Positions 22,701 to 27,419 of a DNA stretch of 64,000 nucleotides are shown in pieces. The notes under the pieces are model-generated. The model did not search any database, was not told the DNA's origin, and saw nothing but the letters and a program-made list of their open reading frames with translations. This DNA is from Podarcis filfolensis (lineage: Eukaryota). The DNA lies in NCBI GenBank assembly GCA_964270895.1, contig OZ185437.1. One strand, 5' to 3'. The translations under genes and the position numbers were made by a program. Each line of letters starts with the position of its first letter. The stretch's first letter is position 1.

Positions 22701-25700
22701 CCACGTGGGGGGGGATGGCACAGGCTGAATGGTCAGCGGCAATTCCCCGGGCCGTCTGTGGCCAGATCCAGAAGGAAATTGGGCCAGATATGGCCCTGGG
22801 GCCGTAGTTTGCCGACCCATGTGTTAGACAGTTGTCACAGGGAGTTTTACCATATTCAATCATTCTTGATTTGAGCCTATGGAGATTCTGAATTTTGGCA
22901 CTACATCCATTTTATACCTCTAAACGATAGTTTGGCAGTACATTTAGTTGAGAGTTGTAGCCAGTAAATCCTTACAATTTCCCAGTTTCCTAAGCATTTT
23001 CTAGACTTATATAGTGGCTAAAACTGACAAAGCAAATAGGAGAACGGTAGTTAAAGATACTAACCTGCAGCATCTTTGTCCATTTTGTTCACAACAGGTC
23101 TTTGAGTTGCCATGATTAGTCATTATAGCCTTCTCAATATGTGAAAAAGAGAGTCGCCAAGTGTTTTCTAAGTTTTTTTTTTAAAAAAAGAAACAATGTA
23201 AAATATTGGAAATCTCTCTTTAAATAACATGTTGATTGAGCTATTTTTTAACTGTTTATTAGTGACAGATTATGTGACCCTTTAAGCTACTATGTGAACA
23301 CTGAAACTCATAAGCAAAAACTTGCAGCTGTGGAAAGGCACAACTTTTGCCCTTGTGCTGGTTCTGGCCTAAATGCTGCCACTGTGCATAGATATGCTGA
23401 GCAAAATCCAAGTCAAGTGGTATCTTAGCCTTGGAAAAAGGAATACAACCCAGTTCTTCACTTTTCTGCTTGTATAGGAAGTTTAGCTACCATGAAGCAG
23501 AGAGCTTATCCCACTGTTGTTCAATTGTGCCTTTAGGATTGGTCTGATGACTGTTGCCCAGCTTTAATATTCTTTTAGAATATTAGAATAAAGAATAAAA
23601 GAGATTCCTTCTTAAGAAATAACAGAACAGGGACCCTGGTACTTCAAAACATTTGTTGTTATTTACAGCACATAGAAAGAATAACCAATTACTGCAGTCT
23701 CTTGAAAATAGTCTACCACCACACAACAGCTAGAATACCTGATACAATGACATGACTTTGTGCATTATGTATTTAGCCAAATATAAGCTTTAGTACCTAT
23801 TAAGCACTTTCCATCTTTGGCAATCTTGGGCACGAGGTAGAGTGGTTCGTTTAAAAAGGCATTCTTTACTTTTCTTCCTAGCCATCCTGCAATATCCAGG
23901 CCATTCCTTGTACTTTCACACCAGTTCCGGTGCCGAAATTCCAAAGCAAGAATGATATCTACCGATATAACGGAGGGAGGCTTTCCAATGAGAAGGGTTA
24001 CTGCTGGGCATCCAGGCTTCTTTCTCTCTACATGCACTTCCACATCCAGATCTGTTGATAGCAACAGCAACAATCTAATACAAACCAATTTCATTGTGTT
24101 TCATTAAGATTTCCCCACCTCACAATGACTTGAACAGGAAGTTAAGAATATGTACTTAAAACAATATAGCCAAGTAAGCAGCATCAACTTCAGTTATGGC
24201 ACTTAATGCCAGCAGCTAACACAGACCTTGGAAAAAACAATGTGTTAGTGGCACTACAGTTCTGCTATTCTTACTCTGCAACAAAAAACTAAATTCCAAT
24301 TTAAACACTATGTGGTGAACAAGAATATAACACAATTATTAAGGAAGCTGTAGGCTGGATTCAACAAACAGGCTAGTGGAAGCCTGCACAAGGATTTCTG
24401 CCAGTGCAACAGGTCTTGTCAGCTTTCTGCTCCCCAAGTACCCCCCTCCAAATAGGCTCAGAGGTGGGTGGAAGAACTTCCAGAACAGGGAGGAGAGGGG
24501 ATATAATTCCATTGGGCGAGCTGATATGCTTGTGCTCCTAGAACATTTGGGAAAGGGTGATGTTGAATTCTTTGCAGTATATTTTGGGTTATCTCTTAAA
24601 ATATACAATATTTAATGTTTCCCAATAAAAATAATATCCAATTTGTATAGTAAATGTTTACAATACAAAGTCAATTTTATATTGACATTCTTCTAACCAA
24701 ATATTTCAGTTCAACTAACTTTTTGTTATGGCAAAAATGGCAGGTGTTCAGCATTTAAAATTAACATGACTTTCTGCTTATCAAACTAATGTTTCTAATG
24801 TTTCTATTAAACTAGATGTTTAACTAACTTTCTGCTTATCAAACTAATCTTATCTTCCATTTCAAGCAGCTGAGTTTTCCAATTCCATTGCAGAAATCCT
24901 ACATTACTATTTCTAATTGGACCTATAAATTTCAGTGCGACTAGAGAGCATTCATCTGTTTGCACACAGTATTTGAGGAGGGTTGCTTATCTCTGAAGAG
25001 GAAGGAAAAAAATTAATGTAATGAATACTTACCCTTATTTTTTTTTACTTCTTCTATAATAATGTTCCTCAGTGCTGACAGCATATCAGAAGATGAAAGA
25101 TGCATTTTGTCATCTAAAAATTTAGCTAGATGTGCCTTTTCTCCAGGGTTCCTTTTCAATTTTACATAGAAGAAAGCACCAGAAGCAGCAACATTGCAGG
25201 ATTCTAGTTCAACTCTCATATCTGGTACTTTGAGCATAATATCAAATTCATTTGGGTTAGAAATCTGCAAGACAGACAAAAACATTTCTCACAATTTACT
25301 GTGTCCCAGAATGTGTTAATAACTTGTGTTCTCATGACTCCAGACTAAAGGTCATCCTTACAGCCCTCTGGAGACAACCACTGAAAAGTGCTTCTGCGCA
25401 GTCATGTCATTTGAAATACCCTTGCTAGGTGCATAATAGTGATCAAAACCCACACACATTTGCTTACACCCACAGGCTGGCAGCCTCAATGGCACCCCTC
25501 TGGAGGCTTCATCTGGGGCAAAAATGCTTTCCCCCACCCCATAGCTACAATGAGAGGTCTTTCTTTTGCCCCATGCTTTCCCTGGGAAAACCCGCTGTTT
25601 ACTGCTGAATGGGAACAAACGTCAATCTTCAGAAAACTGACATTTGTTCTGATTCAGTGGTAAACGGGTTTTCCCGAGAAAAGCGATGGGATAAAGTGCT

Positions 25701-27055
25701 TTCAAACTGCCCAGCTGCATGGAGGACCGCCACATAGACGTACTTTCCAGAAGCCTCAACAGGAGGGCAATAATGCTGACATCATCCCCAAATCTCAGCA
25801 TCCACGACTACAGTGTTTTTAAGTCCTTCCAGTAGCACCTTAAAGACCAACTAAGTTAGTTCTTGGTATGAGCTTTCGTGTGCATGCACACTTCTTCAGA
25901 TCCACTGAAACAGAAGTTGCCAGATCCTTCTATATAGTGAGAAGGTGGGGAGGGGTATTAGTGTTTTTAAGGTTTGGGATCTGGCAGCTTTTGGACCAGC
26001 AAGGAAAAAATGCCCCGAGCGGTCTCCAGCACTGCATCTTCCATTACCTTCAGGCGCTCGTAGTAACTGCCGGTGCCCAGCACTTCGACGCAGGAGAAGC
26101 ACGCTTCACTCTTTATTGCTGTTACCAAGATGTCCCTGACATCGTTAACCAGCTGCGCGGCCTTGGAGCGCTCCTCTTTAGCTAGCCTGAGCTTCTCCAG
26201 CACCTGCCTCAAGCTGCGTTTGCCCCTCGGGCCAGGCTCCTTGAGAAGCAGCTTCCCTCGGGCGCCGGCTTCCTTCCCCGCCTTCTCCTGCTCTCTCTTT
26301 CGGGAATCTCTCCTCCCTGCGGAGGCGCTTTCTTTGCCTGGCTGGCCGACTTCTTCCTTCTCCTTGGGGAGAGGCTTCGCCTTCTGGGAAGCGACCCGCT
26401 TGTTGGGGGCAACTACTGCGCTTCCTCGCGGGGCGGGCTCTAGTTTTACCAGAGCACACATAGCCTGCTCGGCTTCCCCCGCCTTTTGCGCGCCCTTTTC
26501 CTTCCGGGAAGCTTTCTTTCCACTCGGGGCAGCAGCGCCGTTTGCTGCTTCGGCTTCGGGCCGTTCCACTGCCGAGATAGTGTATTTTTCCAGCGCCTGC
26601 GTCAGGCTTGTGATGCCGCTCGCGCCAGGCTCCTTGGGAGCAAATGTGCTCTTCAGTTTCCTCCGGGCCCCCCCTACGGTTTTCCCCTGGTCTGGCGGCT
26701 CCTTCTGGGAGCCTTTCTTCCCACTTTGGGCAGCAGCGCCGTTCGCTGCCTGCAGGGGTTCCTCGGCGTCGGCGCGCTCGCCTGCACCGAGCGTGAGCTT
26801 TGCCAGCGCTTGCCACAAGCCAGGCTCCTCGGGAGCAAGTTTGCTCTTAGCTTGGTCCGGCTCCTTCTTCTTCTGGGACGTTTTCCTCCCACTTGAGGCA
26901 GCAACTCCTTTCGCCGCCTGCTGCGATGCCCGGTCTCCCTCGTCGCCCCGTCTGCCCTTCCCTCGCCCTTTGGATCCCGCAGTGCCTCCGTCCCCTTTCG
27001 CTGCCGGGGCCGCCTCGCCCTTCCTCGCGCCTCTCCCGGCTCCACCGCGCCCCAT
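16420..27055 (-). CDS. CGAS: Cyclic GMP-AMP synthase (cGAS/MB21D1), 5 exons, 646 aa
   Basis: complement(join(16420..16762,23065..23167,23797..24051,25033..25264,26048..27055)) = 1941 nt. Contains the NTase motif GSYYE..KIS.PNEFD, catalytic D in [25 protein letters not shown] and the zinc thumb [16 protein letters not shown]. Confidence 0.96.
17281..19810 (+). mobile_element. 5'-truncated L1-clade LINE (ORF2, frameshifted), antisense in cGAS intron 4
   Basis: GKS.GPDG, W..A.VTLIPK, DQAGF, D.KKAFD, G.RQGCPL, KYLG, C-terminal WW.C; AATAAA plus A-rich tail; 18-bp TSD AAAAGTGG(T/G)TCCTGATTG at a TT|AAAA site. Confidence 0.88.
20130..22035 (-). mobile_element. 5'-truncated RTE-X-like non-LTR retrotransposon, open 601-codon RT plus Cys/His C-terminus
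   Basis: [44 protein letters not shown]-terminal [13 protein letters not shown]; AATAAA plus (CTTGAA) tail; perfect 14-bp TSD TCTCTCTGCCCATC (20116-20129, 22036-22049). Clade assignment is from motifs only. Confidence 0.82.
22238..22821. mobile_element. hAT (Charlie-like) non-autonomous element in cGAS intron 4
   Basis: TIR CAGAGGTCGGCAAACT / AGTTTGCCGACCCATG; flanks CACTAGAC/TGTTAGAC. Confidence 0.75.
23065..23167 (-). CDS. CGAS: cGAS exon 4 ([33 protein letters not shown]; zinc thumb)
   Basis: Not in the ORF track; read by hand; ttag / gttagt. Confidence 0.95.
23797..24051 (-). CDS. CGAS: cGAS exon 3 ([19 protein letters not shown]...SVDIILALE...YLVPK...KCLI)
   Basis: aacag / gtacta; third catalytic Asp. 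Confidence 0.95.
25033..25264 (-). CDS. CGAS: cGAS exon 2 ([11 protein letters not shown]...VKLKRNPG...EEVKKNK)
   Basis: tgcag / gtaagt; catalytic E-x-D. Confidence 0.95.
25824..25959 (-). mobile_element. Penelope-like element 3' end in cGAS intron 1
   Basis: Identical to the 6090 copy over >70 nt; 12-bp TSD AGTGTTTTTAAG (25812-25823, 25960-25971). Confidence 0.82.
25866..25903 (-). ncRNA. Minimal type I hammerhead ribozyme motif, sense in cGAS intron 1
   Basis: GGAU-CUGAAGAA-GUGUG/CAUG/CACAC-GAA-AGCUC-AUAC; core intact, one stem I mismatch. Confidence 0.75.
26048..27055 (-). CDS. CGAS: cGAS exon 1 (336 aa: long basic N-terminus, spine helix, GSYYE)
   Basis: Strong Kozak GCGCCATGG at 27055; AAG|gtaatg donor. 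Confidence 0.9.
26180..26920 (-). repeat. Degenerate in-frame ~195-nt (65-aa) tandem repeat within cGAS exon 1
   Basis: Anchor GCCAGGCTC/GGCGGGCTC at 26231, 26432, 26624, 26819 (spacings 201/192/195); second anchor GGCAGCA at 26528, 26729, 26897. Confidence 0.75.
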
Positions 27056-27169
27056 GGCGCCAGAAAAAGATGTCCTCGCTGCGGAGCTCAGCGTCTCCTG
27101 TGTCGGCGCCCCGCGCCCGCCCCGCCACATATGAACCTGCTAGCCACGTGAACGGCCGCATCCTGAAGG

Positions 27170-27181
27170 AGAAACGAAACT
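27170..27181 (-). promoter_or_regulatory. ISRE (AGTTTCGTTTCT, Mx-type) in the cGAS promoter, with E-box CACGTG at 27145-27150 and GC boxes at ~27109-27126
   Basis: Exact motif 115-126 bp upstream of the ATG, within a CpG island. Confidence 0.65.
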
Positions 27182-27419
27182 TATCGGCTGCGGGGAGCGT
27201 GTCTGAACCAGCTTGCTCCCTCCCTCCCCGTCTTCCTTATTTTGGGTTGCCCAGTCAAGTCAGGGGATGGAGCAAGTCCCCTTTGAGGAAGTACGAGGGC
27301 AGTTTAGAGAAAAGGCGAGCGAGACGCAGCATGAGAGAAGTTTATACAGTAGGCATGCGAGACATGGAGACAGTGGCTAGAGGAAAGTCCCCGCTGCAGC
27401 CTCCCTCATAGCATTAGAG

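Follow-up and report, generated by a model that had tools for sequence, protein, structure and literature searches.

Does the N-terminal tail of a lizard cGAS contain copies of the beginning of the protein's own catalytic core and, if so, how were these copies generated and do they have a role? This question is raised by a stretch of 64,000 nucleotides of contig OZ185437.1 (assembly GCA_964270895.1) from Podarcis filfolensis, the whole of which is referred to here as the window, and the minus strand of which carries an intact cGAS (MB21D1) orthologue in five exons. A preliminary description of this DNA had proposed that exon 1 encodes 336 amino acids (aa), a length borne out by the gene model and by the spliced joint to exon 2, and that its product holds repeats re-copying the start of the spine helix. 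In the current work, the presence of tandem in-frame repeat units in cGAS exon 1 was confirmed, the duplication being in frame, transcribed, positionally orthologous in three genera and variable in copy number within Podarcis. As to its origin, it is probable that unequal crossing-over in lacertids lengthened the basic, disordered tail, with the fragments of the helix being mostly passengers.

Repeat units in exon 1 and their presence in the transcript

Exon 1 is composed of four tandem units of 56-67 aa (u1 to u4, Table 1), the boundaries of which were set at a recurring SG[KR][KR] motif (aa 55, 111, 178 and ~245). An EP[G/A] motif is found at aa 77-79, 142-144, 206-208 and 273-275, i.e. with a spacing of 65, 64 and 67 residues, in agreement with the period of 64-67 codons that had been noted previously. 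Units u1 and u2 each hold a diverged pre-helix EPG followed by approximately 15 residues of the helix (named H1 and H2, respectively). As alignment of the whole exon to itself produced a long, composition-driven and uninformative path, unit-wise tests were used instead, in which local alignments were compared with 1000 composition-preserving shuffles of the protein, and those of the DNA with codon shuffles. At the protein level, the z-score was 14.2 for u1-u2, 10.5 for u2-u4 (u4 being the unit of the true helix) and 5.4 for u1-u4, none of which was reached by any of the 1000 shuffles, and 5.3 for u3-u4 (reached by one of 1000), while no significant protein similarity of u3 to u1 or u2 was detected in this test (z 1.6-2.4). 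At the DNA level, z-scores of 12.2 (u2-u4), 10.2 (u1-u2) and 8.6 (u1-u4) were obtained. The internal similarity therefore goes beyond that of low-complexity shuffles (z 5-14 for protein, 9-12 for DNA), and the proposal that two units are diverged copies of the pre-helix segment and the start of helix alpha1 withstood both types of shuffling.

A search for repeats in the DNA recovered the AANGAAA..SGKK motif, which had also been described as recurrent, in three copies of 64 nt with 70-77% identity, and matched the true helix start (26158-26246) to both copies over 54-57 nt at 63-78% identity, with H2 reaching 78% over 54 nt; the best match of this search was 90% identical over 30 nt. Tandem Repeats Finder, when applied to 25900-27200, reported none of the units, which are too diverged for it, and returned only a CGCCC pentanucleotide microsatellite of 3.8 copies located in the 5' leader (window 27107-27126). 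The alignment of u2 with u4 runs from a basic SG-KK-S-K patch through GAR-KL and EPG into the helix (S-L-x-Q-x-L-E-K) and on to E-R, and the duplicated block therefore crossed the boundary between tail and core.

The position of this boundary was obtained by alignment to solved structures of the human cGAS core in the PDB, to the first 59 residues of which window aa 278-336 can be aligned. Residue 336 is placed against residue 219 of a 522-aa chain, which corresponds to an offset of +117, and human L165 is equivalent to residue 282, precisely as had been predicted. The last unit thus runs into the start of helix alpha1 and includes the counterpart, LEKLRL, of the human CRM1 export signal 169-LEKLKL-174 (PMC11266671, citing Sun et al. 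2021), which also agrees with the earlier assignment. The N-terminal tail in front of the core is 271 aa long and contains 56 Lys/Arg residues with a net charge of +24, to which u1 and u2 together contribute 20 Lys/Arg and a net charge of +5.

Evidence for transcription was provided by contigs from three RNA-like runs (belonging to three studies), in which the exon 1-exon 2 joint 26048|25264 is present; this joint skips 783 nt bounded by GT..AG on the minus strand. The status of these runs as RNA was inferred from the spliced joint, which was not found in a DNA-like run of the same organism. The contigs derive from a species approximately 4% diverged from the window, with the same extra Arg codon as P. 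muralis, and are continuous over 26048-27168, i.e. all of exon 1. Because they cover exon 1 without interruption and are spliced to exon 2, the repeats are part of the mature mRNA, downstream of both candidate translation starts. One of these is an ATG in a GCCATGG context that initiates the sequence MGRGG, common to all lacertids compared (the donor of the exon being AAG|GTAATG). The other is located upstream at window 27128-27130, in frame and adding 25 codons, in a weak context (CAT ATG T); since it is in frame in Podarcis only, being mutated in Zootoca and out of frame with stops in Lacerta, MGRGG is the conserved start. Translation accordingly begins upstream of the repeats; a start downstream of them would have counted against the preliminary description. 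In the NCBI annotation, cGAS of P. muralis and of P. lilfordi starts at the upstream ATG, thereby gaining 25 aa, and both models are probably over-extended at the N-terminus, given that this ATG is not conserved in Zootoca or Lacerta.

Distribution of the units among lacertids and other vertebrates

The DNA of exon 1 was compared between the window, P. lilfordi, P. muralis, Zootoca and two Lacerta paralogues, with one assembly per species. Units u1 to u4 are kept in frame in all of these gene copies and group by position rather than by species (89-98% identity for u1-u1 and 87-98% for u2-u2, as compared to 73-78% for u1-u2), from which it follows that the duplication giving rise to u1 and u2 is older than the split between Podarcis, Zootoca and Lacerta. 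Exon 1 of P. lilfordi, known from a single assembly, encodes 403 aa and holds one additional unit of 67 aa, in which u2 is duplicated again with 97% DNA identity to its neighbour; this unit is, as read from that one assembly, a recent gain, so that the copy number differs within Podarcis. In Lacerta agilis, the two cGAS paralogues are arranged in tandem approximately 8 kb apart (CM020418.1, 35.708-35.738 Mb), both with repeat units, and one of them has lost GKEAGA..GKLLP through a deletion immediately ahead of the true helix.

In order to cover a wider range of species, the helix start of each of 112 cGAS orthologues was compared with the tail of the same protein. The six lacertid sequences gave z-scores of 2.1-7.0, against a median of -0.16 over the 112 orthologues, and the sole non-lacertid that stood out was one flatfish protein with a tail of 533 aa. 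Among these orthologues, the re-copied helix was not found in Rhineura, Salvator, Elgaria, Anolis, Hemicordylus, skinks, geckos and tuatara, nor in the turtles, birds and mammals scanned; the nearest outgroups in the sample are Rhineura (an amphisbaenian) and Salvator (a teiid). The re-copied helix is thus, among the orthologues scanned, specific to lacertids, and the original attribution of the feature to squamates in general could not be upheld. When a profile of the helix start was derived from non-lacertid orthologues, the copies escaped detection, with all scores being within the shuffled range; their similarity is to the helix of the lacertids themselves. Counterparts of the u3 sequence were recognized, by eye, in the tails of Rhineura and Salvator.

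The flatfish protein, from Limanda limanda, is a cGAS-like sequence of 909 aa with a helix-versus-tail z-score of 4.6 and strong internal repeats (z 21), and might represent either a second independent case of re-copying or a fused gene model. Internal repeats of any kind, as scored by local alignment of prefixes to suffixes with shuffles, exceeded z 6 in the tails of 12 of the 112 orthologues, whereas blastp of the tails against themselves returned the diagonal only; judged from these scores, the cGAS tail is in general prone to the formation of repeats. One of the other cases is the 957-aa cGAS of Rhineura floridana, the tail of which contains three near-identical repeats of approximately 136 aa (self-alignment z 47), and the annotated protein of which has a leader of approximately 93 aa upstream of the conserved MGRGGAG start, this leader probably being an annotation artefact.

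Origin of the units and weighing of the explanations

The sequence of events that would account for these observations is as follows. Once lacertids had diverged from amphisbaenians and teiids, a tandem duplication would have taken place in their lineage, affecting approximately 60 aa at the transition from the disordered basic tail to the catalytic core. The duplicated stretch straddles this transition and consists of the Ser/Lys-rich basic patch, GAR-KL and EPG, followed by the initial ~15 residues of spine helix alpha1. The most likely mechanism is unequal crossing-over in a permissive disordered region, which would have placed the extra units u1 and u2 upstream of the older, degenerate u3 and the parental u4, and which may still be active, as a third extra unit was gained in P. 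lilfordi. The main effect would be a longer and more multivalent basic disordered tail. The disordered N-terminal region of cGAS is described as governing DNA interaction and condensate properties (PMC11761673) and has been tied to nuclear and centromeric association (PMC6391843), and for this reason a modest effect on the valency of DNA binding is the safest functional interpretation: the longer tail could have a modest influence on the binding of DNA and on how condensates behave. The helix fragments, in turn, would be largely passengers that lost stable helicity or never had it, with no detectable purifying constraint and with H1 alone keeping, by descent, a hydrophobic spacing that resembles an export signal. 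They may have a specific role, be it in export, in contacting DNA or as a decoy, but such a role finds no support.

That the fragments are passengers is suggested by their rate of change and predicted structure. The ratio of non-synonymous to synonymous substitution rates (dN/dS), pooled across genera, amounts to 0.34 for the true helix start, 0.69 for the non-helix part of the tail, ~0.76 for H1 and ~2.4 for H2. In two phylogenetically independent pairs, H2 has accumulated 2 synonymous versus 19 non-synonymous changes, a ratio which differs from that of the rest of the tail (Fisher p=0.033) and from that of the true helix (p=0.049), and H2 appears to evolve at or above the neutral rate. In an AlphaFold2 model of full-length P. 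muralis cGAS, based on a 63-sequence alignment, residues 1-300 are coil with a predicted local distance difference test score (pLDDT) below 50, a helix begins only at residue 308 (equivalent to window L282) and the copies are not docked on the core. The model of window exon 1 contains, apart from the true helix at 282-326, only short helices of 7-9 residues at 79-87 (H1) and 151-157 (H2) with a pLDDT of ~50. Conserved functional helices are thus not what the copies look like. Comparison of codons indicates that both ancestral copies probably had GGA (Gly) at the position where the true helix has the Glu of LEK, and that this Gly was replaced by Ala or Glu on four separate occasions in Podarcis (H1 and H2 of the window, H1 and one H2 copy of P. 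lilfordi). The likeness of the second copy to LEK, which had been pointed out earlier, is therefore genuine in the window, but appears to be derived in this species and not inherited. The Gly replacement may also explain why weak helices are seen in the model of the window and not in that of P. muralis. Regarding the spacing of hydrophobic residues, H2 follows the strict pattern in Zootoca only; it is loose in the window, with Tyr at the third position, which is occupied by Cys in P. muralis, P. lilfordi and Lacerta, the latter also being without the first hydrophobic residue. Taken together, the extra copies seem to be drifting rather than conserved, and the evidence leans weakly towards their being non-functional.

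Several points weigh against this interpretation. The non-synonymous excess in H2 is not significantly above neutrality (binomial p=0.07) and could equally reflect diversifying selection, while the lacertids sampled are so close (dS ~0.1) that the power to detect constraint on segments of 20-25 codons is low. The alignment on which the AlphaFold2 models depend has a depth of five or six sequences in the tail, and 'disordered' is in this respect weak evidence. The recurrent loss of Gly, along with the weak helices modelled in the window, hints at selection towards helicity instead of decay. Furthermore, H1 keeps the class-1a spacing L-x3-L-x2-L-x-L in five of six lacertid sequences (phi-x3-phi-x2-phi-x-phi, where phi is a hydrophobic residue, at aa 80-89 of the window and in four of the five other lacertid genes, Zootoca having Trp at the first position), and both tandem paralogues of Lacerta agilis hold the units intact and in frame.

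Some of these points would also be expected if, in line with the idea of the preliminary description, the extra copies of the helix start were short linear motifs with a function of their own within the disordered tail, with H1, and H2 in some species, acting as a CRM1-type export signal or as an additional DNA-contacting amphipathic helix, so that lacertid cGAS would be shifted towards the cytoplasm or its sensing of DNA length altered. The spacing of H1, the register of H2 (kept in Zootoca, loose in the window), the weak helices, the repeated Gly replacements and the intact frame in every lacertid gene copy are consistent with this, as is the location of the reported human export signal (PMC11266671) in the parental segment; this assignment, however, goes back to a single study. 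Yet the class-1a pattern is common and, being inherited from the parent helix, is no evidence of selection. In H2, moreover, the spacing is lost in Lacerta, and one of the hydrophobic positions is occupied by Cys in two species of Podarcis. Given, in addition, a dN/dS of ~0.76 for H1 and above 1 for H2, the lack of predicted helix in the P. muralis copies and the Gly/Pro-rich sequence that flanks the copies, functional motifs are considered unlikely.

The substitution pattern of H2, significantly unlike the rest of the tail, is also what a second explanation would draw upon, according to which the copies evolve under diversifying selection and serve as mimics or decoys for the N-terminus of the spine helix, for example by absorbing a viral antagonist or protease aimed at that surface, or by acting as an intramolecular competitor that tunes autoinhibition. 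The difference in unit copy number between Podarcis species and the tandem duplication of cGAS in Lacerta agilis would fit such a scenario, but the excess over neutrality is not significant, no partner is known, relaxed constraint in a young duplicate predicts the same pattern, and no docking of the copies on the core is seen in the AlphaFold2 model; we regard it as very improbable. A broader version of both ideas, in which H1 and some H2 copies are exposed CRM1 signals or diversifying helix mimics, repeat number allows localisation or evasion of antagonists to be tuned, and the additional P. lilfordi unit and the Gly changes reflect ongoing adaptation, is judged distinctly doubtful. Finally, the repeats could be thought to be an artefact of a low-complexity composition rich in Lys, Ala, Gly and Glu, or of mis-assembly, seeing that the tail is compositionally biased and that Tandem Repeats Finder was negative. 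This is scarcely credible: neither protein nor codon shuffles ever reach the scores of u1-u2, u2-u4 and u1-u4, identity is as high as 90% over 30 nt, and the same architecture recurs in the RNA contigs as well as in five further gene copies that were assembled independently, by which the artefact is effectively refuted. Tail lengthening with helix fragments as passengers is thus retained as the preferred explanation; of the interpretation first put forward, the expansion of the tail and the presence of helix-start copies have stood, whereas its squamate-wide scope has not, and the copies do not have the appearance of conserved, functional helices.

Gene model, comparison with known systems and significance

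The gene is, on the basis of its sequence, a vertebrate cGAS of the Mab-21 nucleotidyltransferase type, intact and transcribed, for which DNA-stimulated synthesis of 2'3'-cGAMP would be expected. Its closest database protein is Podarcis muralis cGAS (90% identity over exon 1 and 89-98% over the other exons), followed by Zootoca vivipara cGAS and the two Lacerta agilis paralogues, and these closest proteins carry Pfam PF03281 and PF20266. Exon 1 ends with GSYYE, and the columns of the catalytic motifs (GSYYE, NEFDIM and SVDIILALE, corresponding to the hG[GS], [DE]h[DE] and downstream Asp of the Glu/Asp triad) are invariant in the 63-sequence alignment, as are H543, C549, C550 and C557 of the Zn-thumb, which is present as H-x5-CC-x6-C. 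The coordinates of exons and units are collected in Table 1.

Table 1 Features of the cGAS gene in the window, with repeat units of exon 1
Feature	Coordinates	Strand	Details
Repeat unit u1	26726..26893	minus	aa 55-110; basic SGRK..KKKE, EEPG, helix-like segment, AANGAAA
H1, first extra copy of pre-helix EPG and helix start	26774..26830	minus	aa 76-94; aligns to aa 273-296
Repeat unit u2	26525..26725	minus	aa 111-177; helix-like segment, then AANGAAA
H2, second extra copy of pre-helix EPG and helix start	26561..26635	minus	aa 141-165
Unit u3, older and degenerate	26330..26524	minus	aa 178-242; u3-u4 z 5.3
Unit u4, parental	26150..26329	minus	aa 243-302; continues into true spine helix
True catalytic-core start	26168..26242	minus	aa 272-296; LEKLRL at aa 286-291 = human 169-174
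cGAS exon 1, coding sequence	27055..26048	minus	336 aa; start ATG 27055-27053; donor GT 26047-26046
cGAS exon 2	25264..25033	minus	catalytic Glu/Asp, NEFDIM; spliced joint
cGAS exon 3	24052-23798	minus	open; holds SVDIILALE
cGAS exon 4	23171-23064	minus	open; Zn-thumb motif spans exons 4 and 5
cGAS exon 5	16764-16423	minus	open; Zn-thumb H..CC..CC shared with exon 4

Intron 1 contains, at window 25824-25960, an element of approximately 140 nt with A-rich flanks. Its summed word depth amounts to ~1.4 million in the contigs of the DNA-like run and to 20-74 thousand in those of the RNA-like runs, and the related species lacks it at this site, 25811 being connected directly to 25960 in a DNA contig. 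This huge depth and the absence from a relative indicate a very high-copy insertion, similar to a short interspersed element, that is specific to the lineage of the window; an Rfam scan of 25600-26100 returned no family at E<=0.01.

As in other vertebrate cGAS proteins (the tail of which comprises residues 1-~160 in human), a disordered Lys/Arg-rich tail is followed by a Mab-21 core that begins with spine helix alpha1, and the core of the window protein shares the catalytic NEFD and SVD and the H..CC..CC of the Zn-thumb. It differs from human cGAS in a tail that is longer by approximately 117 aa and in the four tandem units, two of which hold the first helix segment of the core itself. Independent expansions of the same disordered region, with units unrelated to those of lacertids, are seen in Rhineura floridana (~136 aa, three times), Anolis sagrei (~40 aa), Salvator merianae, the turtle Emydura, the bat Molossus and the wallaby Notamacropus (short, of PPVLQEKK type); these remain within the tail without extending into the helix start, in contrast to the lacertid units. 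With respect to the human CRM1 signal 169-LEKLKL-174 (PMC11266671 and the protocol paper PMC8261000), window aa 282-291 are the orthologous site, and H1 appears to have the same hydrophobic spacing, whereas H2 appears to be off consensus in most species; the human-type signal is part of a folded helix, while the lacertid copies are in a disordered context. A literature search yielded no description of repeats in the cGAS tail of reptiles or across orthologues, although its coverage was incomplete and novelty is provisional.

The cGAS tail controls DNA binding, condensate properties and localisation, and has been studied almost exclusively in human and mouse. The natural variants encountered here comprise two extra units in most lacertids, three in P. 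lilfordi and unrelated arrays in Rhineura, Anolis, a bat, a turtle and a wallaby. They could serve, as they stand, as constructs by which the effect of tail valency, and of an export-signal helix out of its context, on sensing may be assessed. If the copies are inert, they would constitute a tidy example of neutral repeat turnover in the disordered region of an immune gene, and nothing more. The locus further demonstrates that evolution can move the boundary between tail and core, a piece of the folded core having been copied into the disordered region.

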